Shown: one piece after another, positions 3,502 through 27,812 of the stretch
Position numbering within the stretch: position 1 is the first letter of the stretch
How the letters are laid out: every line of letters begins with the position of its first letter
Assembly: GCA_009103225.1 (NCBI GenBank)
Contig: RHPI01001507.1
Coordinates: forward strand, 416,805 to 480,804
Reading direction: 5' to 3'
DNA: 64,000 bases
Source: Chlorokybus atmophyticus
Taxonomy: Eukaryota; Plantae; Mesostigma and Chlorokybus algae
Position numbers and translations under genes: made by a program
Notes under the pieces: model-generated
Seen by the model: only the letters and a program-made list of their open reading frames with translations
What the model was told of the DNA's origin: nothing
The model's database searches: none

Positions 3502-3888
3502 NNNNNNNNNNNNNNNNNNNNNNNNNNNNNNNNNNNNNNNNNNNNNNNNNNNNNNNNNNNNNNNNNNNNNNNNNNNNNNNNNNNNNNNNNNNNNNNNNNN
3601 NNNNNNNNNNNNNNNNNNNNNNNNNNNNNNNNNNNNNNNNNNNNNNNNNNNNNNNNNNNNNNNNNNNNNNNNNNNNNNNNNNNNNNNNNNNNNNNNNNNN
3701 NNNNNNNNNNNNNNNNNNNNNNNNNNNNNNNNNNNNNNNNNNNNNNNNNNNNNNNNNNNNNNNNNNNNNNNNNNNNNNNNNNNNNNNNNNNNNNNNNNNN
3801 NNNNNNNNNNNNNNNNNNNNNNNNNNNNNNNNNNNNNNNNNNNNNNNNNNNNNNNNNNNNNNNNNNNNNNNNNNNNNNNNNNNNNNNN
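3502..3888. other. Assembly gap (387 N) flanked by G-rich sequence
   Basis: Run of N seen directly. Confidence 1.
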
Positions 3889-4818: not shown

Positions 4819-7179
4819 ATGCTTGTCATGGGCGGTACAGCTGATGCGACGAGGAACAACTTGTCAGCAGTGGTGGCCTGCGTGGCGCGGGCGGTTGCCG
4901 GTGATGCCGGTACATGCGGTGGGGGGTTGGGTATGGCAGCGTGTGTTGCCCGCATGGTGCTTGGGTTGGGCGACTTGGCATTGAAGGCGCACGCTGCGCA
5001 CAAGCGAGGAGACACTGCCGAGGAGAAGTATCAGCTGCTTGACGAGCGCCTCCAAGCGGTGCGGACGGAGTTTGTGGAAGGAGTTGTTTCGCTGCAGACG
5101 TTCCTCGACCAACAACCATCGGAGGACGAAGTGCGCAAGGATGCGAACAACCGCTTAGAGGAGCTACAGCGCTCTGCGCAGGACACGGCAGCTGATGACA
5201 AGATGTGGCAGTTGCAGCAATCAATCAATTCTGTCTGCCATCAGTTTGTAGAGTTCCTACAGGCCAGCGAGGCGCTACGTCAAAGCATGGCCGGTGCCAT
5301 GCTGATGGAGAGCCAGAAGGTGGCTGCACATGCACTTCAGCACGCCAGCACGCTACAGTATCCGGACGGACTTCCCTTCGTCATGATGCGGGTCACCGTG
5401 ACGGTCATGCAGGCGGCAACCCTGGAGCTGTGCGGTACGGCAAAGGAGTGCAAGGACAAGCTTGAACGAGCCATTGACATGATCAAGTGCGAGGCATCGG
5501 CCATTCAGCAGGTGTTGGTGGCAGATGCCTATATAAGTGTGCACCACCATTGGGCCGTTCTGGCCTGGCTTTCCGCACTCGGAAGGCACCTCACGGGTAA
5601 GGCGCCTATACTGATTAAGTGCTGCAGGCAGGCACAGGCTGTACGCGTGCTTTGAGCCAAACCTACGAGAATACGCGGTTGCACATGTGCATGTGTGCGC
5701 GTGGGCACGTGAGTGTTTGTGCGGCACTGGGCGTTTGAGGGCGCATATAAGGCTCCTGCACGCGCACGTCAGCACGTGCAGTCTTTGTGGCTAATTTTGC
5801 TTGTGTGGTGGCCTTCGACAGAGTTTCACCGTGGTGAGCGCCCTGATGCTTCACCAAGCCCCAAGAGAAGCGGCTCTCTCGAAGAGCTTCTTGGGCAGCA
5901 ACCAACCACAGCTGGCGAGCACTTGACAAGCTGCGATGCAGCAGCGCAACGAGTGCACGCTATGTTTGACTGGATTCCCGTGCCGGATCTGGAGGGTCCT
6001 GATGCGCTCATTGCTCAGATGGTGCGTTTGCTGAGCCATGGGTCGCCGTCTGCCGTGGCGATGGCGGCCGCAGGTCTTGAGGCCTTGGCACTCAATCCAC
6101 ATGGCATGGAAGTCTTGGCTTTGGCAGGGGAGTCCGTGCTGCAGCCTCTGCAGAGCTACATTGTCAAGTCGGGGCAGCCTGCTGATTGCCACGCCTCCGT
6201 GGCCTGCTGCCTGATGAAGATGGGCTCATGGCGGTGCTCACTGGAGTGGAAAGGCCTCCAAGACTGGGTCCAATCAGTGGCATGGAGCCCAGACGGTCAA
6301 ACATTGGCCACTGCGGATTCTCTTACCGCCGCCCTGTGGAACGCAGCCACGGGTGAGCGCATGCACCAGTTCACATTAGATGACCTTTATGTGCAGTCCG
6401 TCAGGTACAGTCCAGATGGGAGCAGGCTTGCCATTGGAGCAATGAAAGACGAAGACGAAGACGACACTGAAAGTTTTGCAATCCACATCATGGATGTGGC
6501 GTCAAGAAAGAATGTGCAAAATGTTGCCTCTAAAGGCCCATGGATGGCGTGGAGTCCAGACGGAAGCAAGATAGCGACAGTGTCTCCAGATGTTGACTCG
6601 GCAGTATGCATATGGGATGCTACAACAGGAGTGGCCACAGGCGTCAGCCTGGTTGGCCATAAATCTGCTGTTAACTGCGTTTCTTGGAGCCCGGGCGGTC
6701 AACGCCTGGCCACCAGCTCTCATGATAAGACAGCAGCGGTGTGGAGCGCGCAAGACGGGCAGTGCCTTATTGAATTGACAGGTCATACGAAGCAAGTTAA
6801 GAGAATTGCATGGAGCCCTGACGGGTGCAGGTTGGCTACTGGGTCAGGTGACTGCACTGTGGCAGTATGGGACGCAGAATCAGGCCAGCGCATAGCTGAA
6901 ATGAGGCATAACCTTTGGGTTAATGGAGTAGCTTGGAGCCCCGTCGGTTGGTGGATAGCGACGGCGTCACATGACAGGACAGCAAAGGTGTGGCATGCGC
7001 GCACCGGGCAGCAGCTCAGCATGCTGGAGCACGAAGATCGTGCGCGTTGCGTGGCTTGGAGTCCAGATGGGCGCAAGCTGGCAACTGGTTGGGGAATTTG
7101 GATAAGTCAGCCAGGACTTGGGAGAGGTTATTGCATGTCAGATGTGGTCGTTTGTACGTCCCTGCATTTCTGTTGGTGA
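4819..7179 (+). CDS. Helical N-terminal domain + ARM-like segment + seven-repeat WD40 protein (about 711 aa, two exons)
   Basis: Exon 4819-5596 and exon 5822-7179 join in frame across a phase-1 GT-AG intron 5597-5821 (ACG G|AG TTT). Seven WD40 repeats carry W/Y-SP(D/G/V)G motifs, several with GH...W(D). The ARM-like helix is LIAQMVRLLSHGSPSAVAMAAAGLEALA. An acceptor at 4788 suggests a possible upstream exon, so the start is uncertain. Confidence 0.85.
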
Positions 7180-8400
7180 TTGTGGACAATGATGGCTGTG
7201 GTCTGCAGGAGCTGACAAGAGAGCAACGCAGTGAACCAGCATCTTGGCATGCAATTCAAGCGTGAGTGGACAGGCCGTTGCGAGTGGTGGAGATAACATC
7301 AGTAAGCAGTAAGATGTCCAAGCCAGTGCGTTAGTTTTTGCATGTTGCAGACGTTGCGAGAATCTATACACACCAGCATGGTGCCTCTTTGAATATTGTG
7401 TCTGCAACTTGTTGGCATGTTGAGTTGTGTGCCGTTCTCAAACAAACTGAACATTGCACTTAGTGCGCTCTTGCGAACACTGTCCTTGTGTAGATGCGTG
7501 ACCTTGAGCGTGGTTGCGTTTGTGCAAGGCAGGTATATTGTATCATATGAGTCAGGAGAAGCAGTTCCAGCGCAACCGTTCTGTACTGGCTTTCATTGGC
7601 TACGAACCCTTTGGGGCACTAGCTTCTGCGCAACAAGGAGTTGGCTCATTGCAAGTCCGCCTTCCTTCTGACTACGCCACCGTGGGCGCCATTGCCCGAC
7701 GATGGCATCGTTGGCACAAGTCGATGCCACTTGCTGCTGCAGCTACGACATGCAAGTTCCTAGCACGAGCAACCACTTTTCAATTGTATGGATGGCTGGT
7801 GTGGTTGTCGCATTTGCTTGATGTTCTTGTCTGCAGGTGTGTGTCATGCATGTCTACAACTACAGCGCGCACTCTGTACGCATACGCGTGCACACAATAT
7901 GCATGATAGGCAATGGTGCTGGACCTGCTTGTGCAAAAAAGAAAGGTGTTCAAGTTACTGTGCACATGTGGGCATGAGACAAGTGTGCATCCGCAAGTGG
8001 TGATGAACAAAAACAGCATTTGCTACCTATATGTGCAACCACTCCGGTCTGATCTACAATGTACCACATTAGTAGTGGCACTTACTTTGTTGTAACTATC
8101 ATCCCTGTTTCAAGACAGCGCCAACCTGAACAACAGCCTATTCATTTACTATCGTTCGGGCCATACTACTGTTGCTTAAGAGTGCATGGCAAGAAAACCT
8201 TCTTTGACATGTAACGCCGTTATGGCATGTGACAGATGTTGTGTACGCTCTTGTCACACATGTGCCATGCGCCCTATGCCAACGAAAGCATCAGTAGATT
8301 TCGCCAACAATGGCGATCGGGCTGCGGCAAAACAGCCCGAAATTGGTCTAGATCTAGTCGCGCCTAAGGGGTCATTACGGCCCCCACCTTTATAGCCTGT

Positions 8401-9171
8401 GCGGTGACACCGTGGGGCCACGTGCAGGGCAACTTCACACCGGTTGAGCTGGAGCTGTCCCCGGCAGTCAAGGAAGGGCTGGCGTATGTTGCCGTGATCA
8501 TAGAGGCAGCTCGCCGCTTCCCAAACCTGCGGCACACAACCGTCATGCTTGAAGGGGACTGTCAACCAGCCCTACAAGCTCTCTCCAAGCTAGTCTCCCC
8601 TTCGCCTTACCTAAGAGCCCTGCTCTATAAGCTGTGGGGAGTGCTCTGGGCTAGGGATCTCCACTTGCGTTGCTCGTGGCAGCCGCGCGAGCGGCTGCAG
8701 TTGGAAGACTGGCTCTCCAAAACCGCGGATGCGGGCGATTGGGCCCTGCGCACAACAACGCGTGATCAAGTGATAGCGCGATGGGGTGCACCGACTGTAG
8801 ACATGTTTGCTTCGGAGGTCAATACCGTTGCTCCCGCCTTCTTCTCCGCTTGTAACAGCCCGAGCTCGAGTGGCAACGCTCTCACCTCCGGTTGGGACTG
8901 CGCCCCGCGCGGCCTCTTGTGGGTCCTTCCGCCCTTGGTGCTGCTGGGCACGGCAGTACGGTTGGTTGCGCACGCTCGATGTGATTGCGTGTTGGTTGTG
9001 CCTCAATGGACACAGAAACCTTGGTGGCCACAAGTTCTGGGGCTACCTATTCATGAGTCTATGCTACTTCATGCACACCCAGCTCTGTTTGTGAGGGGTA
9101 GGAGAGTGCCTGCGCACATCCCTAGCCCGGGCAAATACCCGCATGTGGCATTCTATATAGTGTTCACCTGA
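8401..9171 (+). mobile_element. DIRS-type RNase H (N-terminally broken) + Dam-like N6-adenine methyltransferase domain
   Basis: The RNase H motifs are GDCQPAL and WQPRERLQLEDWLSK. The MT motifs are PTVDMFAS, NALTSGW, LLWVLPP and LVVPQWTQKPWW, which is the typical DIRS RH-MT order. The frame is open for 256 codons. Confidence 0.85.
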
Positions 9172-9974
9172 TTAGACGGGCACAAGTAGTGCCGCACCAT
9201 GACCTCAGTCCGCCACAAACCCTGTTGTTGTAGCTCTGCCATGGTCATGCCTTGTTTTTGGCCGTGTTGCACACCATCTCGCCTGAAACTATGCAGCGTC
9301 ACATGTGGCTTGTCAATGCCGCTAGCCAACAGGTGCTTGCGTAACGCCTTGTTAGCCGCGGCAGTTTGTAGAGGTCCGCCCAGCCACTTTCTTTTGCTTT
9401 GATGCATGCCACGGAACAAATAGCCCGTGCCAAGCTCCATGTTGTGCTGACGCGCACACTCTACAAACTGCCCCATCTCCTGATGCATGTCAAAAACAAT
9501 GCCACCATGTGTGAGTGGGGTAGCCGGGGGCAACATGTCCTTCCGGTTCTTTAGCACCCCTGTGCGGACTTGTAAGCCCACTTCTGTTTGCTTTAGTTGG
9601 TGCAATTGCAGCTGGCACGCTTCACCGCCCCTCTGCCAACTACACCACAAGTATCGGGACAGCAATCGGTCCCGCATAGGAAGCAACACTTCGGGCCCGC
9701 TTGTAGCCTGTACTTGTGCGTCCAAGTGCGTTGACAGCGTGCGAACGTCGCTCACTATAAAAGGCTCAGCTTGATGAGGCTGTACACCAGCCTTGACAAC
9801 CCCTCGCTGATACGCCTTTACATACTCAATAACTTCGGGTGCTCGGCAAGGATTTCCACTTGCCATGATGCTGTCCCATGCGCTGCCCCTCCCGATTCTG
9901 GCAAAGCCGTTGGTCAAGCTGGTCAGCATGTTCCGAAGGGACTTGGCAGCTAATTGTTGTCTGCCAGACCCCAG
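9153..9974 (-). mobile_element. Tyrosine recombinase (N-terminus missing), fused in frame to the upstream RT
   Basis: Catalytic set R (MRDRLL), K (VLKNRK), HxxR (HSFRR), W (GLWRT) and Y (VRHYL). The GNPC...V..Y.K.Y segment resembles the core-binding region of retroelement YRs. Confidence 0.9.
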
Positions 9975-10757
9975 ACCCCAGCCCTTCTCTCCTGATGCAT
10001 CTGCGCGCAGCAGAATGGAGCTAGGCGGTTTCCACCAAGCGCTGGCTGTGTACATCCGCATGGCTGATCGCAACCACGCAATGAACTCTTTTGTAATGGC
10101 CGGCGCTGCAAACGGTGCTTCCCAAGTGTTGGCGTAGTTTACTACTTCCATGAGCGACCTAGCAAATAGCAGCACGGGAGGAACGGCCAGGCGTAGGCTG
10201 ATTAGCTTGCCTGCTATGCGCGCCAGCACTTTGTTGGTGAGCGTTGGGCGCGCCAGCGTGTCCTCAAGCAGCGTGTCAAGGTCCTCAAGCTTGGCTTCGG
10301 GCACCGAGAACGCGCCCACTTGCGAGTCCACAATGAGCCCCAGCAGCTGCAAGCGCATGGTGGGGAAAGCATTGCACTTAGACAGTCCAAAGAACTCGCG
10401 CAGTGCCGCACAGAGCTGCATGATCAGCTCAATACGCCATAGTAGATGCCCTTGGTTGCGATGCGCCGTGTGCATGTCATCTATGTAGCTGAGGGTGCCA
10501 ATGCCCGCACTTCGCAATGGCTTGTGGATGACAAGCTGCACCATTGTAAATGCATAGCATGCTTGATTCAGTCCAAAGGGGAGCACGTTCCATCTGAACA
10601 CCTGACCTTCAAAGGCCACGCACAAGTAATTGGTGTCACGTGCGCGGATGGGAATGTGGTGGTATCCGCTTTTCAAGTCAAAGCTTGCTTGCCATGCTCC
10701 TACTTTGGTGTAGTGTAACACGTCCCTTAAGCGCTCGTAGTGGAAAGGTATGTGTGC
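9975..10757 (-). mobile_element. DIRS-type reverse transcriptase plus the first RNase H motif, 5'-truncated
   Basis: FDLKSGYHHI, WNVLPFGL, YIDD and LQLLGLIVDS, ending at LLRADASGEKGWG (RNase H motif 1). Confidence 0.92.
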
Positions 10758-10776
10758 GAGAGAGAGAGAGAGAGAG

Positions 10777-11490
10777 GTACCAGGAACCAACTTCTGCATC
10801 TGAACATCAATGAACCAAGGTCAGTGTATGCCTTACGACAACATACGTTAACACCCCACCCATGCGCACGCCCACGCACATGTGCACACGTGCACGTGCA
10901 CACACCTCCCGTATTTGGCAGTCAAGCTCTTCAACGTTGCGGGACATTGACTTGTCATGCCTGTTGTGATCATGCACTGAACACGATGCGAAGACAGAGA
11001 CCATCCCGCCCAGAATTGCCGCGCAGCTTGCTGCTCACCCTCTGACCACCGGGGCAAGTGAGGCCTTCCTACTCGTCTCACTGGCAGCTGGCAAGCATTT
11101 AATAAGAGAGGGAAGCAGATGAAGCGCTTGTTGAGTAAATAGCGGTCACTGCTGTCATAACCCTCAAGATCGAGAGTGGCGCTACATGCGGCGTGAAGTT
11201 GTGACGAACATGTGCCCTGTGACTGCCTGCAAATGTTTCTGCGAGCAGTGGCAATGTCAGCTGAATAGTGCAGCAAACCTTACTTGTGCAAAGTCGGGTA
11301 ACGCTGAGGTGCACTGACTCTGTTTGTGGAGAATTCCTTGACGGGTGCGTGCTGCAAGGTCACCACGGATTGCACTGTTACACAGTCACTTGAGTACTTG
11401 CAAGAGACGGCAACAGCTTCAACAGGCAACGGATTAGTTGGATGCTTTACCAGCCATGCCTGTTGGAGCAAGGCATGCTGCATGCTGCAT
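10777..11490 (-). pseudogene. mTERF-like paralog a (truncated; close paralog of copy d)
   Basis: Near-colinear with 20800-21530. The splice donor after ...AGTGACC is deleted, there is a 1-nt deletion in GACAA(A)GTCA, and the last exon is cut off at a (GA)n tract (10758-10776). Confidence 0.8.
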
Positions 11491-13134
11491 GACGCACATT
11501 GCCACCATGTCAAGTCAGTCTTGTAACACGGCACCTGAAACGCGCATACCGATAGTTTTACCAAGATTGCATCGTTTGTTGGTGAAAACAGAGGCATGCA
11601 GCTGAGCGGTTCGTGCATGCAAGCTGCAGGTGAGGATGATGCACACAGGTGCTCACAGCAACAGCTGTTGCTCCATGCAGTGAATCACAGAGGTCAGCAT
11701 TGCTCGGCTGACCTGCAGCAAACATGTGAGTACCAAGGGATGTGACTGTAGAACCATGATAGACATCGCAAACTGCGCAGCCCCAATGTTCAACCACAAT
11801 GCATGCTTTGCCTCAGCTCATGCAACACTAGGCTGACGGCTATCCGACCTGACAAGATTGTTAGTGAGCAACATGTGTACTCCTCGTGTAATATCTTCGT
11901 GCAAGCCTTTAACGGTGGGCAAGCACAACCAACATAAGCTATAGCTACCTAAAAGTTTGACAGCGTACCGTTTGCAGAACAACAGAGTGGATGTGACTTC
12001 ACTGGCGACGTCTTTCTGCCTGGCACCGAAACCCAGCAGCAGGCGCCATGCTTGCATAGCTGCTGCCGGCGCCCGCGACGGCGCTGACCACTAGGACTAC
12101 AACACGGACGTCGGCAACGACCCCCAAAATTACCACCGCCACCACCGCCACCCTCGCCGCCCCCGCCCCCGCTCGCAGGTTAACCAAGTGTCAATCTAAT
12201 TCTGTCAGCAACATTGCCATTGTGCATGCCATGAGCGGCGGGGGTGGCAGCGGCGGCGACGTAGGCGGCGTGTCGGTGTGGTAGAAGCGATGGTGTCGTC
12301 CATGGCCACGCCGGCCATATCAATTGCCAGCGGATTGGAGTCATGCTGCGCGTGGCTAGCGACGGGCGGGCAGCGTGGCAGCGGTTTGCATACTTAAGCT
12401 GAATTTGCAGCTGCTGCTGTCACTTGCAGGTACGCTGTGCAAGTTAAGCTCAGGGCCGTGTGTTGTGTGAGAACCCAGCATGCTTGGTACTTGTCTGTAA
12501 GACCAGCTGTTGATTGGGCGCATGCATTTACACCAAAGCTATCAGGGCTCAGTTGGTCAGCGCGCCTTGTGCCACTGCTTCAATCAGCTGAGTAACCCCT
12601 TGAAACAAAGGCTGTAGCTAAGCTCACAAAAGGGAAGCAGCTCACATGTTGACTTGCCACATGCTTATGTTCACTATGCACCACGCTCCGTCGTCAATTG
12701 TTGTCACCTGAGATGACTGAGAGACTGGCGTTCGTTAGTAGGTCGGTGCTAGCCATAGGACCAGCATTGGTTTGTGCACCTGCTGCCTGTCAAGCTGTAA
12801 ATAATAGTGGCAGCTTAGCAGCGACGTGAATTCCGCTCGACACTCGATGGCATGCTGACCAGCGTGTGTGTATACGGATTAGTATGGATTGCAGCGTGTG
12901 TGTATACAAGCGTGTGTGTGCGTGTGCATGTATGGTCAGATCGTAACAAATCGCTACAAAACAGTCAACACTGATGTTAAGATGGCGGCAACATACATAA
13001 TCAGCTGTAGAAGTGGCTGCTGACAGTGCCTTGCTGGTCGTAAGGCAGTGTCAGCAGTTAATTCTTCTCACACCTCTTGTAATCCTCCTTCAAGCGCGTG
13101 CAGTTGACTGACTAAGCTGACTGCGTCACAGTGC

Positions 13135-14386
13135 ATGATGTTTTCCCTCATACGCACCATGAGAGCTGCCACAGCCAGAGCCATTGCACCGCGCTTCTAC
13201 AACTCTGCGTACAGGCAAGGCCCAGCTCGGTTTGCCGCTTTTAACATGTCTGAAGTCAGCCCACCTTTCAACCCCATTGGTTGCAGGCCAATTTAAAGCA
13301 CATTTGCAACACAATGGCACATTGCATGCGGCGCAACTCCTGAGGATGCTTTTGACATGAGTAATGAGGTGAGGAGCTGCTCCTCCCAAGCCGTGCTGAT
13401 GCTTGCTCACAAGTTGGAATTGTTGGCACTGCCCACTCATTGTTGTCTGTTGCCAGCTGCCGGCAAAAAGGGTGGGCAGGGCTGGATTGCCCCCATGGTC
13501 AGAAGCTGAGCAGCAAGCTGTGCGCGAGTTCTGGGAGGGGTTATGTCTTTCGCCGCAACAAGTGGCGACCTTGATAGCAAAAGGCATGTCCTTGTCACTT
13601 TACCGCAGTCCCAAAGAGCTGGAGCGGCGACTTTCCGAGGTACTTCGTGTCAATTGGCTCAACCGTGCATGGGTGCTTGTGGTTATGCTTGTCGCATTCC
13701 AGATTCAGAAGTTACTTCCTGGTGTCAACACGAAGTTAGCAGCAACGCTTGCAATTCTAGAGCGACGTCCTGAGACTTTTGCAAACAACCATAAAGGTTC
13801 CAGGCGCCTCCTAAGCATCAGTGTCATGGACCTTTGCATTATGCTGCGCATAGCTCCTCAGTTGCTAACTGCAACACCAGAGGCTGTGGCTAAGAGTTTC
13901 GCTGCCTGGCGGACATTGTTGGCAGTTGATCATGCACAAATGGTTGTGTCTGTGAAACGATGCCCTCAGTTGATCTGCAATGCCGATGCGTCTGTGCGCA
14001 TCAAAGCTTCAAACACTGGGGGACACGCTTGAGTCTTGCCATATAGGGAGCAGGAGCCTTGCCCTGCAGATATGTACAAGCCAAATGTGCTTGTCCGGGT
14101 GTCATGTGAGCGAATGCAAGCGGCTAGCTACAGAATTTACGGAAGTGGAGCGAAGCATGTGGTGGCATGGAAGTGCGCATTTAAGTGTAGAGACCACGTG
14201 CTCGACCGTTTGTTGTTCTGCCGGCAGCATGCAGTCCCATTGGCAGCCTCAACAGCCCTGTCCTTTTCTGCAGCCTCCTGGCACACAAGGTTTCCTGCGT
14301 TTGTCGGCTGGCAACAGGAGCTTTCAACGGCACGGCAGGAGCGAACAGTCAATAGTGATGTCATGCCAACATCCGAGAATGTTTGA
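13135..14386 (+). pseudogene. mTERF-like paralog b
   Basis: Exons 13135-~13370, 13457-13639 and 13703-14386. mTERF-like repeats (LRIAPQLLTATPEAVAKSF, KRCPQLI) and C-terminal RLLFC. There is an in-frame TAA at 13294-13296 and several frameshifts relative to copy d. Confidence 0.8.
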
Positions 14387-17898: not shown

Positions 17899-19166
17899 TC
17901 ATACTTGCTCTAATGTTGGCCCAACAATCAAGTATGCTAACTGCGCCTGTCGTGCCTCCATAAGGTCCTGCTGCCAGCTAATAAACAGGGAACCATTTGC
18001 GCCAGGAGGCTGCAAAGCACACCAGGGCTGATGAGGCTGCCATAGGAACTGCAAGCTGCCGACAGAACAACAAACGGTCGAGCACATTGTCTCCACATTC
18101 AAGTGCTAGGCGCCATGTCAACACCGGCCACGCGCTTCGTCTCAGCTCCAAAAACTCAGTAGCTAGCCGCTTGCAGCGTTTGTGTTGTGCGCTTACTTGA
18201 CATCCGAACAACTACTCCCGGTTGATACATGAAAATCTGCATGGCAAAGTGCCTGCTCCCCAGCTTGTAAAACCCAAAGGCGTCTAGAAATGTCTGAAGC
18301 TTGCTGTGCACGGAAGCACTATTGAGGCAGATCAACTCCGGACATCGTTTTACAAACGTGACCATTTGTGCATGTTCAACTGCAAGCGACATCCGCCAGG
18401 CAGCAAATCTTTCAGCCACAACCTCCGATGTGAGAGTGAGCATGTGAGGAGTTCTGTGGAGCATGATGCGAAGGTCCTTGTCAGTAATGCTTAGAAGCGT
18501 CCGGAGCCTTTCAAGGTTGTATGCGAGAGTCTCAGGATGGCGCTGTAAAAGTGTACAGCCTGCTATTGCTGTTGTGTTCACACCAGGAAGCAGTTTCAAC
18601 ATCTGCCATGTGACAAGTTCAACCACAAGCACCCGCAAGTAAAGATGAGACAGTTGATGCAACGTACCTCAAGGATGCGTCACCAGCTCTCTAGGATTAC
18701 AGTAAATGACAGAGTCTTGCCCACCGCGATGAACAATGCCACACGTTGCGGAGGAAGAGACAACCCCTCCCAAAATTCGCGCACAGTATGCTGCTCGGCT
18801 TCTGACCATGGGGCACGGGGGGCCTGCCCACCTGTCTTGCCAGCACCTGACCAACAGACATTGTTGAGTGGCAGCACCAACAGCTCAAACTTCCAAGCAA
18901 GCATCAGCATGTGCTTGGGGAGAGCAGCTCACCTTCCTGCTTTCGTTAACAGCAGTCTCAGGAGTTGTTGTGCCGCATGCCAAGCGCAATTGTGCGGCAA
19001 AAGCGCACTGCAGCTGCCTGCAAGCGAGTTGTGAGACATTAACTTTGCAGGTGAGATCAACTGCGGCATACCAACGCTGGCCTTGCCTTTTCAACAAGTT
19101 GTAGAAGCCGGGTGCAATGGCTCTGGCTGCGGAAGCTCTTGTGGCGCGCGCCAGGGAGAACATCAT
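17899..19166 (-). pseudogene. mTERF-like paralog c (close paralog of copy b)
   Basis: The transit-peptide-like start MMFSLARATRAS matches copy b. Repeats LHRTPHMLTLTSEVVAERF and KRCPELI. Frameshifts occur in exon 2 and in the last exon. Confidence 0.8.
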
Positions 19167-20799
19167 ATATGTACTGTAACATAGTCACAGTCAGATCATC
19201 AAGTCATATGCACGCCGTTGCAAAAGGATCACAAGCGTTGTAAACAGCCTTCGCTGACAGTGCTTTGCTGGTTGCAAGGCACGGCAATGTCGGTAGCTTT
19301 TTCTACAGCCGATTATACAAATTGTTGTACCGACATCAGCGTGCATTGGTTTCCAGCAAACTGCAACCACTTGGCAACCTGGCCACACGCGCGCATGCAC
19401 ACATTCGTATAATACGCGCTAGTCAGCAAACCGTCCAGATTTGAGTCAAAGAGAGGTTGCTATTAACTAAGTACCCAAGCTGGAAAGCTGCCGTTGTTGC
19501 TTCAAGCTTGACAGTCAGCACGTGCAAAGCACGATGATGGTCGTAATGCTAGTACCGACCTGAATACTGCGAGTGCCTCAGTTACTGCCGGAGACACCAA
19601 CTCACGGGAAGACGGTATGGTTTTGTTGTGAACACCTAAGCTTATGGCATGGCAAGTTAACATGCGTCCTATTGTGAGCTTGGCTACAGCAGATGTTCAC
19701 AGGTTTCACACAGCTTTGAGACAATGGCATACGGCGAGCGGCTGCGCTAACCAGCTGAGCCACAGTAGCTTTGTTCACAATGCATGCTACGTAACGCACG
19801 GCATAAGCTTGACCTACACAGTGTACCTGCAAGAGTCAGCAGCGACAGCTGCAATTGACACCTCAGCTCACGCACTAAAGCTACCCGCCCGTCGCTGGCC
19901 ACGCAGAGCATGCCACCAACCCCCTTGCACTCGATAGGGCGATGCCACCGCCCCTACCGTGAGCGACTCTCGGTACGCGCGCACGTCGCCGCCGCTGCCC
20001 CACCCGCTCATGGCTTGCACAATGGCAAGGTCGTTGACAGAGACGAGCTTGACACTTGGTTAAGCTGCGGGCGGGGCGGCGGTGGTGGCGGCGGTGGTGG
20101 AGGGCGTTGTTGCCGATGTCCATGTCGTTGTCCGTGCTGTAGACCTTGTGACTAGCGCCGTGTCGCAGGCGCTGGAGGCAGCCATGCATGTAAGCATGCC
20201 GCCTGCTGCAGTCCGTCAGAGGCGACGGTGGCAGCAGCTTGCATAGGGTTTTAGTGCCCGGCAGAAAGACGGCGCCAGTGAACTGACTCTGTTGTTCTGC
20301 AAACGGTACGTTGTGAAGCTTTCAGTAAGCTGTTGGTAGTGTTTGCCCATCGTTGGGAACTTGCACACAGCTTTCACACGACGAGTGCACATGCATGTTG
20401 CTCAACGACAATCTTGTCAGGCAGGATAGCAGTTAGTCCATAGTTGTGCGTGAGCTGGAACTGCCTCAAAGCATGCATTGCGGTTGAGCCTTGAGGGTGG
20501 GGGCAGCGTGTTTACAATGTCTATCATGGTTCTACAGTCACATCCTTTGGTATCAACATGTTTGCTGCAGGTCAGCTGAGCAATGCTGACCTCTGTGTCT
20601 GACGCATGAAGCAACAGCTCAAGTTGCTGTGAGCACCTGTGTCCATTAACCTCACCTGTAGCTTGCATGCACCAACCGCTCAGCTGCATGCCTCTGTTCT
20701 CACCAACGACCAACGCAACTTTAATACAACTATCAGTATGCGCATTTCAGGTGCCGTGTTACAAGGCTGACTTGGCATGGTGGCAATGTACGTCATGCA

Positions 20800-22539
20800 G
20801 CATGCAGCATGCCTTGCTCCGACAGGCATTGCTGGTAAGGCATCCAACTGGTCCATTGCCTGTTGAAAGCTGTTGCCTTCGCTTGCAAGTACTCTGCAAG
20901 TGACATTCTGTGGCAGTGCAATCCGTGGTGACATCATGGCACGCACCCGTCAAGAAAGTCACCACAAACACAGTCAGCGCACCTCAGCGTTACCGCTTTT
21001 TAAACAAGTAATGTTTGCTGTACTGTGCTGAGTCGACATTGCTACTGCTCACACCGTTGTTTGCAGGCAGTCACAGGGCACATGTGCGTCAGAACTTCAC
21101 GCCGCATGTAGCGCCACTCTTGATCTTGGAGGTTATGACAACAGTGACCAGGTGAGCTGCTACTTACCCAACATGTGCTTCGTCTGCTGCCTTCGCTTAT
21201 TGTGTGCTTGCCAGCTGCCAGTGAGGCGAGTAGGAAGGCCTCACTTGCCCCCGTGGTCAGAGAGTGATCAGCAAGCCGCGCGGCAGTTCTGGGCGGGATG
21301 GTCTCTGTCTCCGCAACGTGTTGAGTCTATGATCACAACAGGCATGACAAAGTCACTGTTTCGCAATCTCGAAGAACTTGACTGCCGAATACGGGAGGTG
21401 TGTGCAAGTGCACATGTGCACATGTGGGCGTGCGCTTGGGCGCGGGCGCGTTGTAATGTTAATTGTCGTAAGGCATACACTGACCTGGCTTCGTTGATGT
21501 TCAGATGCAGAAGTTGGTTCCTGGTATCCACATGGCAAAGCTGACTAGGCCCGAGTTGTTGATGCATTCTCCCGCAACTCTTGCAATGAAGCTACCGGAG
21601 TTAAAGACTATATTGAGCGTCAGTGACAAGGAGCTGTTCGTGATGTTGCGCCAAGCACCCGACGTGCTGAAGTGCACACCAGAGGTTGTGGCTGAAAAAG
21701 TCGCTGCGTGGCGGGCTTTCTTGGCGGTTGATCATGTGCAAATGGTTCAGTTACTCGTACGCTGCCCGGATCTGCTCTATCGCAACGACACTTTTGTGCG
21801 CAGCAAGCTTGGCACGTTCGTAAACACATTTGTGACCTGCAAGTTAGGAAGCAGGGTTCTGGCTTCGAAGATCTTCATGAACCATCCTGGAGTGGTTGTG
21901 AAGCTGTCGTGCGAGCGTATTGAAAGGCGATGCAAGCGTCTTGCAATGGACTTCACCGAAGCAGAGCGCAGCCGTTGGTCGGTGTCGACGTGGAGAGTGG
22001 CTGTCACGCGGGGAGACTGCGTGTTGGACCGGTTGTTGTTCTGTCGGTATCATGCAATCCGCATGCAGGCCACAACAGCCCTCACCATGTCCGCAGCATC
22101 ATGGCACAACAAGTTCCCAGAGTTTCATCAGTGGCAACAAGAGTTTGAAGATGCACGCAACAGGTGCGGTCAACCTGTGAACAGATACTCATGTGTTCGT
22201 GCCCGTGCATTTGTGTACACACGCAGGCGTCAGAGCTGGTTATGTATACTCTGCAATGCAACAGGCTTAGCGGACTCTGTGTGCGCAGGGAGTTGGTTGA
22301 GGCAAGGATGGTTCACACCACTGAGGTCGTCCACTAGGCGCCTCTGTATCACAAGATATGCAAGTTCATATGTACAAATAGAGCTCACTATGTATATGCT
22401 GTCCGCTGGTGAACTCCCTGCATACGTTCACTCTTTTGTGTCATATTACGTCGGTGTTGAGTCAGTCAGTGTCAATGCAAGGCTGGCTGTGTTGTTGGTT
22501 GATGGAGGGCGGATGCGCCTTGGGTTAGGGCATCTCTGA
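20800..22539 (+). CDS. mTERF-like paralog d, the most intact copy (5' end uncertain)
   Basis: Exons 21067-21151, 21215-21397 and 21505-onward splice in frame. Repeats LRQAPDVLKCTPEVVAEKV and VRCPDLLY, with C-terminal RLLFC...FPEFHQWQQE. The upstream exon has an in-frame TGA at 20901-20903, so it may also be defective. The true 3' end may be spliced near 22164. Confidence 0.65.
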
Positions 22540-23648: not shown

Positions 23649-24873
23649 TTAAGGCAGGGTTGGCAAGCCACCTGTTGGGAGGCCACCTGTTGGCAATACG
23701 AGAGCGTTGATTGCGTTGACAAGCACCAGCTTGTCGACGGTGCTCGTCGGAAGCGTCTTGGAGAGGTTGCACCGTTGCTGGGGCAGCGGCTTCTTGCTTG
23801 CGGAGATGATCTAATTGCAATGCAAAAGTCAGCGCCAGCACTTGACTGCAGTGCACTATGTTTACATGCCGGCGCATGCCTGTCACACGCTCACAAGTCC
23901 AGGCACACTGACAGAAGTGCGTATGCGCGCACAGTGTGTCACTCGTACATAGGCACGCACGCATGCACATACACGCACACGTGCTCATGCTCATAAACAC
24001 ACACTGCACGCATCTACCCACCAGGGTGATGTCGCCTTCCACATATGCAAGGCATTTCCTATCAGGGCCGTTGAGTACGATGCGGCTGATGCCTGCCTTG
24101 ATGCGGTCGCAGACTGTTTGGGCTGGCCAGCTGGCGACGCAAAGAGGGGTTGTTGGAAGAAGCTGTCATCAGCTTACGCCCGCCCGGCATGCCCACGGCA
24201 AAGTTGCCCATCGTCACCATGTACAACAAGCACTGCGCGTCCAATATGTTCGACTGCGGCAGGCTGCAGACGCCACCCGCCAACACGTACCCGTTGCTTC
24301 CAAGGCGAAATGGGTTCAACTGTTGTAGCCAACAACTTACTAGTCAGTCCAACAAGTGTGTATGGTACGATTTCTGCATGGATGATGCAATGTGGGGAAC
24401 CAGAGGTTCATGTCATAGCCAAGTTGTGCTGATTGACTGCTTGAGTAGATTGCACAGTGGGTATGCGTGCTCCCTGGAACATCATGTGAGTATATGTGCT
24501 TACTTGGTTGAGTTGGAAGTTGAAGATGGATGCAACAACCTCGCCACCTATGCCGGAGGGAGTTGGTGCAGGCTGTGAGACAACACTGGGCCTGTCTTGG
24601 GCACATATAGAACAGAATCAAAAAAGTTCCACACACAACGCACACGCACATATACACACACGCATGCGCATAAACATGCAGGAGCACGCATACGTATACA
24701 CGTGCACATGTACACACATGCGCCACTTACACTCCGTTGCCGATCTCAAGGTGGATGACAATGTGCTCCAAGACGCCGAGGCAGATGGCATCAGCGGGGT
24801 TGGTGTGAAGGGAGGCGAGGAGAAGGACAAGCAGTGACGCCGCAGCCGACAAGGAAGAGGAGGAGGACGCCAT
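23649..24873 (-). CDS. Intact five-exon gene for a predicted secreted protein (211 aa), function unknown
   Basis: Exons 24873-24731, 24591-24504, 24319-24178, 24122-24022 and 23810-23649 total 636 nt with matching phases 2/0/1/0 and GT-AG introns. The start MASSSSSLSAAASLLVLLLASLHTNPADA is signal-peptide-like. The gene ends in TAA, with a TGTAA about 150 nt downstream (23498-23494). Confidence 0.8.
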
Positions 24874-25598: not shown

Positions 25599-27812
25599 AG
25601 TCGTGCTACCTTAAGATTGTCAGCAAGCATGCAGCTGCGGCTCCGTCGTGATGTTGAGCGCTGCGCATGCACACATTTCGCAGTCAATTTGCGTCTTGGC
25701 AGTACAGCAATTAGGTCTGATTCAGTAGCTACCTACAGTGTACAATGGGCAAATGTTATGAACGCCTTGGCAAATGTTGTACTACGGGACATGTTCCATG
25801 GCGTTCACGAATTTGCGGGCCGAAAAGTTCCGCACCATTTATTCTGACAGCGCACAAACGCGCATGTCAACCTCGCGCGCAGCGCGTGGCATGCTAGGCG
25901 GCTGTGTGTGGACCTTAACGCGGCTGAGTGACGATGTTAAGACGGCTACGATGGACCCCGAGATGTGTAAACTTGTTAAAGAATACCAAGATATCATGGT
26001 GGACGGACTTCCATCTGGTCTACCACCTCCACGAAGCGTAGACCACCATGTGGAGCTGATTGAGGGCGTTCACAAGCTACCGTATCGACCCGTATACAAA
26101 TTGTCACCTTTGGAGCAAGAAGAGGCCGAGAGGCAGGTGGAGGACTTGCTGAAAAGAGGCTACATGAGGCCTAGTAAGTCCCCTTATGGTGCACCTATTT
26201 TGTTTGTACAAAAGAAGAATGGGAGCTTGCGCATGTGCGTCGACTACCAAGCTCTCAACAACATCACGAAGAGGAATTGCTTTCCACTCCCATGTATCGA
26301 CGAGTTGCTGGAGCAATTGCAAGGTGCGCAGTACTTCACAACACTTGATCTTGCTGGGGGTTATCAACAAATCCGCATCGCGCCTGAGGATTTGGAGAAA
26401 ACAGCTTTCAACACGCGTTATGGGCACTGCAATTGGTTGATTATGTCCTTCGAACTTACGAACGCGCCGGCAACATTTCAAACGCTAATAAACGGCGTTT
26501 TCGCTGATTTAATTGGTACGGTAAGGGAGTCCTCGTGTACCTCGACAACATTTTTGTGTACGCAAAGACAAAGGAAGAGCACGTGGCACTTCTACGGCGC
26601 GTGTTGCAACGTTTGCGCGAACACAAGTTATACGCCCAGCTACAAAAGTGCAAATTCTTGCTTCGAGAGGTGGAGTACTTAGGCCACATCGTGTCGCATG
26701 AAGGCATCAAGCCGGACCCCAACAAAGTGCAGGTGGTGCGCGAGTGGGCTTCCCCGACTAACGTAAAGGAGGTGATGTCCTTTTTAGACCTTGCGGGGTA
26801 TCATCGCAAGTTTATCATGGGGTTTTCGCGCATAGCTGCTCTGTTGACTGCCCTACTCAAGAAGGGAAAGCCTTGAAGCTGGCCAGCAACAGAGGAACAT
26901 GCATTTGCTGCGTTGAAGAAGGCGCTGACGGAGGCACCAGTCCTGGCTCACCCCGACATGGAAAAGACATTTATTTCGGCTTGTGACGCGTCCGACACAG
27001 CCGTAGGAGCTGTTTTGCAGCAAGACCATGGCAACGGCCTTTAACCAGTAGCATTCTTCAGCAAGACGATGAGTGGTGCGGAGCTGAATTATCCCGGGCA
27101 CGAGAAGGAACTGTTGGCGCAAGTAATGGCGCTACGACAATTGCGTTCTTTTCTGAAAGACAAAAAGCTGGAGTTCTTTCAACTTTTTGACTTCGATATT
27201 AAGTACAAGCCCGGTACGTCACATGGTGTTGCTGACGCGCTGAGCCGGCTTAATGCAATTGAGGCACGCGCTCAAGTGCAGCCCGACTGAACCGACCAGA
27301 TTCGGCAAGTGCTTCGTGAAGACACGGAGGGTATGAAAGTGTTGCAAGAGCCGGAAAGTGTAGCTACGGACACAAGTGGGCATTGGTCAATGCGCGACGG
27401 GCTGCTATGGCACCACCGGCGCTTGTACATCCCCAACGTCGCGCATATCCGTGTGAAGTTGCTGAAGGAAGCTCATGACGTGCCCATTGCTGGTCACCAA
27501 GGTTTGGAGAGGACTTTGGCAAGCTTGAAGCAGCGTTTTTACTGGCGAGAGATGCATCGCGATGTGCGCGACTACGTGGCGTTGTGCGACGCATGCCAAA
27601 GGGTGAAGGCAAGCAACCAAAAGCCAGGTGGGTTGCTGCAACCTCTTCCTATGCCATTGTCCAAGTGGGAGCAAGTTACCATGGACTTTATCACGGGGCT
27701 ATCAAAGACAAAAGCAGGGTACGACGCTATACTTGTGTTCGACAAAACCAGCAAAATGGTACGCTTGGCACCATGTGAGTCTTGCACAGCATCGGAGGCA
27801 GCATGCTTGTTC

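Follow-up and report, generated by a model that had tools for sequence, protein, structure and literature searches.

A two-piece fragment of a kangaroo-type DIRS retrotransposon in Chlorokybus atmophyticus, probably formed by end joining or template switching

Introduction

In a 64,000-nucleotide stretch of the Chlorokybus atmophyticus genome (the window), positions 8401 to 10757 contain parts of a DIRS-type retrotransposon in an unusual arrangement, in which a reverse transcriptase (RT) runs directly into a tyrosine recombinase (YR) in one long open reading frame. A preliminary description of this locus, made from the sequence alone, read it as an internal inversion of an element that had created an RT-YR fusion, and took the intact frames to mean that the event was recent or that the frames were under selection. 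Two questions follow from this: by what route did the arrangement arise, and does the fused frame encode anything that functions?

Results

One RNase H domain is divided between two strands. Two open reading frames (ORFs) from the ORF list cover the locus. The ORF on the minus strand (9153-10799; 548 amino acids) begins with the RT part and continues with the YR part, and the ORF on the plus strand (8404-9171; 255 amino acids) encodes the rest of the RNase H and a methyltransferase-like (MT) domain. Both sets of coordinates, and the 19-bp overlap of the convergent ends, were as first described. The features, from left to right, are as follows.

8400/8401, outer junction: the RNase H continuation meets flanking sequence from outside the element, with an in-frame stop at 8365-8367
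8401-9171, plus strand: remaining RNase H (AVTPWG...) and MT-like domain, with no ATG at its start and a stop codon at 9169-9171
9153-9171: convergent overlap (19 bp) of the MT and YR stop regions, with tail-to-tail ORF coordinates, the native arrangement inside the inverted block
9153-9974, minus strand: tyrosine recombinase piece of 273 codons plus stop, comprising the second half of an ALOG-type domain and the complete catalytic domain
9974/9975, inner junction: end of the RT joined in frame to the truncated N-terminal region of the YR
9975-10757, minus strand: DIRS reverse transcriptase piece that starts shortly before motif A, includes YIDD and the thumb/connection region, and ends with the first RNase H motif
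10758-10777: (TC)n/(GA)n microsatellite with a short filler, separating the host paralogue from the RT piece and translated within the ORF as TSLSLSLAH
10778-12034, minus strand: truncated member (copy 1) of a family of mTERF-like host genes, outside the DIRS element and 82% identical by blastn to 20246-21526 on the plus strand (copy 2)

Pfam placed RVT_1 at residues 23 to 156 of the minus-strand ORF and Phage_integrase at residues 373 to 539. The RVT_1 match (E=4e-11) covered only profile positions 56 to 204. The RT piece opens with IPFHYERL...FDLKSGYHH, and finger motifs 1 and 2, which read PMGVV...GK.R.I.NGRYLN in the relatives, were absent upstream of it; YIDD is kept, in agreement with the preliminary description. 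In tblastn searches with the proteins P0001 to P0013, every RT match lay inside 10790-9975. The RT is of the DIRS type, its best relatives being RT-RNase H-MT proteins with an adjacent YR.

All parts of the RNase H are present, on different strands. The RT part of the minus frame closes with DASGEKGWG at 9975 and runs on in frame into the YR, as had been claimed, and this first aspartate motif occupies 9975-10001 on the minus strand. The remainder starts at 8401 on the plus strand, where the frame reads AVTPWGHVQGNF; the plus-strand ORF is without the first RNase H aspartate, and its match to RVT_3 (RNase H-like) was weak and under the Pfam cutoff (E=0.025). The RT and RNase H-MT (RH-MT) pieces were searched apart, and their abutment was taken from the alignment coordinates. 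With P0001, which is the Chlorokybus paralogue Chlat1 Chrsp66S07209 (RT 49% identical), residues 4 to 252 aligned by tblastn to 10721-9975 on the minus strand and residues 253 to 300 to 8401-8544 on the plus strand, exactly where the missing continuation had been proposed to lie. Since the boundary between residues 252 and 253 of P0001 maps to 9975 on one strand and 8401 on the other, the two pieces of the window abut with no residue lost or gained. P0001 and the environmental relatives L001 to L007 (RT identity, 31 to 40%) continue this motif likewise, as DASG..GWGA.TPWG, in line with the GWGAV that the preliminary description had called canonical. The same split was seen with the distant RT-RH-MT proteins P0002, P0003, P0005, P0009, P0011, and P0012.

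The rest of the plus-strand ORF is MT-like. The RH-MT parts of P0002, P0005, P0009, P0011, and P0012 aligned to 8419-9165, and within this, 8527-9165 aligned to the C-terminal regions of P0005, P0009, P0011, and P0012. Two of these proteins, P0009 and P0012, carry Pfam PF05869 (Dam) in the aligned region; a Dam match was not found in the plus-strand ORF itself.

The junctions share two bases and lie outside repeats. Comparison of the two breakpoints showed exactly 2 identical bases (GT), as the preliminary description had noticed, and no inverted repeat. Therefore, site-specific or homologous recombination is unlikely, and end joining or template switching is likely. An inversion mediated by the YR, or by homologous recombination between inverted repeats, was considered and rejected on the same grounds: the only candidate repeat, a 16-nt inverted pair at 8473-8488 and 9972-9987, is misplaced in that it is not located at both breakpoints. 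Separately, the last 20 nt before the RT/RNase H breakpoint (9975-9994, minus strand; CAGGAGAGAAGGGCTGGGGT) are 80% purine. This stretch is polypurine tract-like, which could be relevant if the break arose during reverse transcription, and may equally be due to chance.

An assembly artefact, in which the assembler had produced the inverted block by a chimeric join, would also place the pieces on opposite strands. The window does contain a scaffold gap (387 N at 3502-3888), and no independent record of either ORF was present in the public collections searched. However, the N run is 4.5 kb distant and the breakpoints lie outside repeats. The assembly would have to be wrong at two exact junctions, each in unique sequence without homology. 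Repeat-induced collapse, moreover, produces joins at homologous positions, whereas here RNase H motif 1 is joined to the N-terminal domain of a YR. We regard an artefact as very improbable.

Relatives carry the YR convergent with RH-MT. The native layout was read from DNA sequences surrounding genes related to the RT or to the YR. At six independent loci (L001, L002/L003, L004, L005, L006, and L007), RT and RH-MT are colinear on one strand and the YR is convergent with them on the opposite strand. Their MT and YR genes lie tail-to-tail with gaps of 0 to 270 bp. At L006:107-2080, for instance, the YR gene (plus strand) ends at 1231 and the RH-MT gene (minus strand) ends at 1232, abutting with no spacer; elsewhere among the relatives the gaps are ~60 to 270 bp. 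In none of the six does RT run directly into YR, and all of the word-search matches to the fused ORF (13 of 13) span its RT half only. This layout means that the RH-MT/YR block at 8401-9974 is inverted relative to the RT, the central claim of the preliminary description, and P0001 supports the same reading. In the fragment, the YR is still antisense to RH-MT, the native convergent pair having been kept, but it lies on the same strand as the RT; this strand placement is put down to the rearrangement.

P0001 and L001 to L007 resemble the fragment in the continuation of their RNase H motif and in having a convergent YR and differ from it in two ways: their RT and RH-MT are colinear, and their YRs have the full N-terminal domain. 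One of the closest known systems, by domain set and layout, is Kangaroo, the PAT-like DIRS element of Volvox carteri, with RT-RNase H-MT and an opposite-strand YR convergent with MT, an arrangement that is found here within the inverted block and in the six relatives. Kangaroo has been described as belonging to the PAT type, with its YR domain inverted (PMC4157794), in line with the native order that the preliminary description had given for Volvox kangaroo-type elements. Compared with Kangaroo, the fragment has its RT on the strand opposite RH-MT and is without gag, RT motifs 1 and 2, the YR N terminus, and split direct repeats. Kangaroo also carries internal repeats between MT and YR (PMC4157794), for which there is no room here, since MT and YR overlap by 19 bp in the fragment and abut in L006.

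The sole protein seen with RT and YR in a single frame was P0067, a same-strand PAT-like polyprotein of 1,197 amino acids with the order RT-RNase H-MT-zinc ribbon-ALOG-YR. In P0067, unlike in the fragment, RT is separated from YR by complete RNase H, MT, and ALOG domains, and its YR is only ~25% identical to the window YR. The direct passage from RT into a truncated YR in the fragment is attributable to the rearrangement. Among the relatives examined, none has RT running straight into YR as its native state; family copies with such a frame would have told against an inversion. Neither ORF, nor any protein model more than 49% identical, was present in the protein collections searched. Likewise, neither exact-protein look-ups nor metagenomes, collections that are not expected to hold this alga, contained an independent record of the junctions or closer relatives.

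The YR lacks its N-terminal part, and this part was not detected next to the junction. In DIRS elements, a YR with the catalytic residues R-K-H-R-(H/W)-Y takes the place of an integrase. Such a YR is present here, and its catalytic residues (R115, K142, H228, R231, and Y263, numbered within the YR part) are all conserved, as had been claimed; the Phage_integrase match (E=8.6e-6) scored 26.1 bits, below the cutoff of 27.1. When the YR part served as query in an exhaustive HMMER search, 290 matches were obtained. In these alignments, residues ~1 to 13 of the window YR corresponded to residues ~80 to 140 of full-length YRs, whose N-terminal extension beyond the window YR had a median of 89.5 residues. 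Pfam ALOG directly precedes the integrase domain in the YR relatives P0061, P0067, P0101, P0103, and P0137, and recombinases of the DIRS1 type have ALOG as their DNA-binding domain (PMC3537659). The ~90 N-terminal residues that are absent from the window YR are thus predicted, from these alignments, to be the first half of an ALOG-type DNA-binding domain.

The position of this missing part bears directly on the simplest route to the arrangement, a clean reciprocal two-break inversion of 8401-9974 in an otherwise complete DIRS element. Such an inversion predicts that the sequence left of 8400 is the 5' part of the YR followed by the 3' terminal region of the element. The exact contiguity of RT and RNase H and the presence of GT at both breakpoints fit this, and the frame read across 8400 into 9974 is open for 11 codons. 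It then meets the in-frame stop listed above, however, and has no ATG. A profile of the missing N-terminal part was built from 84 relatives and recovered three of three held-out loci (L004, 1e-18; L002, 8e-14; L001, 8e-5), yet it gave no match in 6900-8460, where the best E value was 12, nor in the rest of the window, where the best was 0.21; the relatives behind it are ~25 to 30% identical, so a very divergent N terminus could escape detection by it. The predicted 5' continuation of the YR was thus not seen left of 8400, which leaves a clean inversion unsupported. On the other side, gag, the RT fingers, and terminal repeats are absent, and a truncated host paralogue is found instead. A clean inversion would need extra deletions, one of them ending exactly at the junction, all within the short time that the frames have stayed open. 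In this respect the preliminary description did not hold, in that the simple reciprocal inversion inside a whole element that it implied is unlikely.

The fragment adjoins a truncated host gene copy. The right flank is a truncated paralogue of an mTERF-like host gene. Homology of this copy to copy 2 runs by blastn from 12034 to 10778 and ends there, where the copy is cut off by the DIRS fragment; copies 1 and 2 are oppositely oriented. It is from the mTERF-like copy that the 548-amino-acid ORF takes its ATG at 10799 and its codons MQKLVPG, and in copy 2 the same codons run on into mTERF-like sequence. A likely GT...CAG intron at ~10800-10937 in copy 1 is conserved in copy 2. ORFs of this family, dispersed or in tandem, were found at 10778-12034 (minus), 13403-14338 (plus), 17981-18871 (minus), 20246-22536 (plus), and 23884-24009 (minus), and the Pfam mTERF match was under the cutoff (E=3e-4; paralogue at 21484-22536).

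We also considered whether 10848-11276, into which a tblastn alignment of P0004 ran, could be the N terminus of a DIRS pol. This was rejected: the N-terminal parts of the relatives had no significant match there, and the region belongs instead to the mTERF-like paralogue family, which has four or five copies in the window. As for gag, the N-terminal parts of the relatives matched nothing near the fragment, and no gag ORF was found.

No sequence beside the fragment resembles the ends of an element. Direct repeats longer than 34 nt were absent from 6500-13000, and none flank the fragment, so that the split direct repeats (A1-B1...A2-B2) of complete elements were not found; nor were long inverted or terminal repeats around it. 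The sole blastn match of 7500-12000 was the host paralogue. The remainder of mTERF-like copy 1 was not found left of 8400, and a simple DIRS insertion into this copy was rejected for this reason.

To the left, 1.2 kb from the fragment, is a WD40-repeat gene (5713-7179, plus strand; at least five WD40 repeats; Pfam E=1e-42), the ORF of which probably extends via an intron past ~7090. No other DIRS copy was found in the window, the remaining RT matches being Gypsy-type or unrelated; the decayed neighbours with which the intact frames had been contrasted were not confirmed as copies of the same family. A 306-codon open frame at 25762-26679 (plus strand) matches Pfam RVT_1 (E=3e-15), and weak matches of the DIRS-like proteins P0009 and P0011 fall inside it, at 26083-26487.

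The open frames are compatible with youth. The 548-codon product would comprise 7 host codons, 9 microsatellite codons, an RT lacking its fingers, a single RNase H motif, and a YR that retains half of its DNA-binding domain. Of the possible substitutions in the two frames, 3.8% create a stop codon. The probability that both frames stay open over 2,412 nt is 0.40 at 1% divergence and 0.065 at 3%, and the open frames are thus compatible with up to ~3% neutral divergence. The prior for an in-frame junction is 1/3.

These values matter for the possibility that the chimeric ORF is held open by selection, as an exapted host gene or a functional variant element. A run of 548 plus 255 codons without a stop, the retention of YIDD and every catalytic residue of the YR, and an ATG that comes from a host gene exon could all be expected of such a gene. 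But the RT fingers are missing, the RNase H is split, and the DNA-binding domain of the YR is halved; in-frame stops lie immediately upstream; a collection of 5.8 billion proteins held no similar model except the 49% paralogue; and youth alone accounts for the open frames. We consider selection extremely improbable. Of the alternative posed at the outset, recent or selected, the first part stands, in that frames which are still open suggest a recent event, and the second is not supported, youth and the 1-in-3 chance of an in-frame junction being sufficient. The intact YIDD and YR catalytic residues would then reflect youth and not function. By the same token, the view of a meaningful RT-YR fusion is not sustained, given that the ORF starts in an mTERF-like remnant and a microsatellite. 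The 548-codon frame is best read as accidental read-through, and from its domain content no working RT, RNase H, or recombinase is predicted.

Discussion

We conclude that 8401-10757 is probably a young fragment in two pieces, non-autonomous and derived from a DIRS element of the kangaroo type (PAT-like, antisense-YR), that arose by end joining or template switching. In the parent element, the RT up to the first RNase H motif was contiguous with the remaining RNase H, the MT, and the antisense YR. The two pieces now lie in opposite orientation, joined tail-to-tail at 9974/9975. Compared with the full element, both outer ends are truncated: gag, RT motifs 1 and 2, ~90 YR residues, and the terminal repeats are absent, and the fragment adjoins a host gene copy that is itself truncated.

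These features most likely stem from one complex event. A candidate is that two-piece DIRS DNA or cDNA, broken or aberrantly primed, was captured where the chromosome had broken in the mTERF-like paralogue; alternatively, an inserted copy may have suffered at least three breaks and lost its outer parts. A single event is more economical because a multistep origin would require that the copy was inserted, partly inverted, and trimmed by two deletions, one of them stopping exactly at the junction, all in the short time allowed by the open frames. The event was probably recent, which would account for the open frames.

Rearranged or 5'-inverted retroelement fragments are known from L1 twin-priming inversions and from cDNA capture at double-strand breaks. 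The fragment shares with those formed by end joining or template switching its contiguous pieces in opposite orientation, its truncated ends, and its 2-nt microhomology. Twin priming of the L1 kind was rejected, since its geometry is wrong: it yields head-to-head joints, whereas the joint here is tail-to-tail, with the upstream and the downstream piece connected through their 3' ends. DIRS elements are not known to use target-primed reverse transcription. Integration of a broken circle in circularly permuted form was rejected as well, as its pieces would share one orientation.

A more speculative route starts from a break between the GWG and AV codons, after which the upstream piece would prime synthesis on the downstream piece and synthesis would stop at the break. 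Run-off at the break would explain the exact contiguity of the GWG and AV pieces. That the fragment is an aberrant product of DIRS replication of this kind (an RNA cut between GWG and AV, with the 5' piece priming on the 3' piece), or else that the chimeric ORF is expressed as a new host gene, is very improbable. If aberrant replication were true, the exact contiguity and both truncated ends would be explained in one step.

The young, end-joined or template-switched fragment that we favor is almost certainly dead and ordinary, and on its own it is a minor finding, another dead and rearranged copy of a retrotransposon whose type is already known. First, it is a base-exact example of a tail-to-tail rearrangement with a 2-nt microhomology. 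Second, it illustrates that function cannot be assumed from a long open "fusion" frame in a piece of a transposon; here, such a frame begins in the remnant of a host exon and runs through a microsatellite. Third, the YRs of this DIRS lineage carry an ALOG-type DNA-binding domain, and the ALOG regulators of plants are thought to derive from the domain of such YRs (PMC3537659). Finally, the fragment points to recent activity of kangaroo-type, antisense-YR DIRS elements in an early-diverging streptophyte alga.
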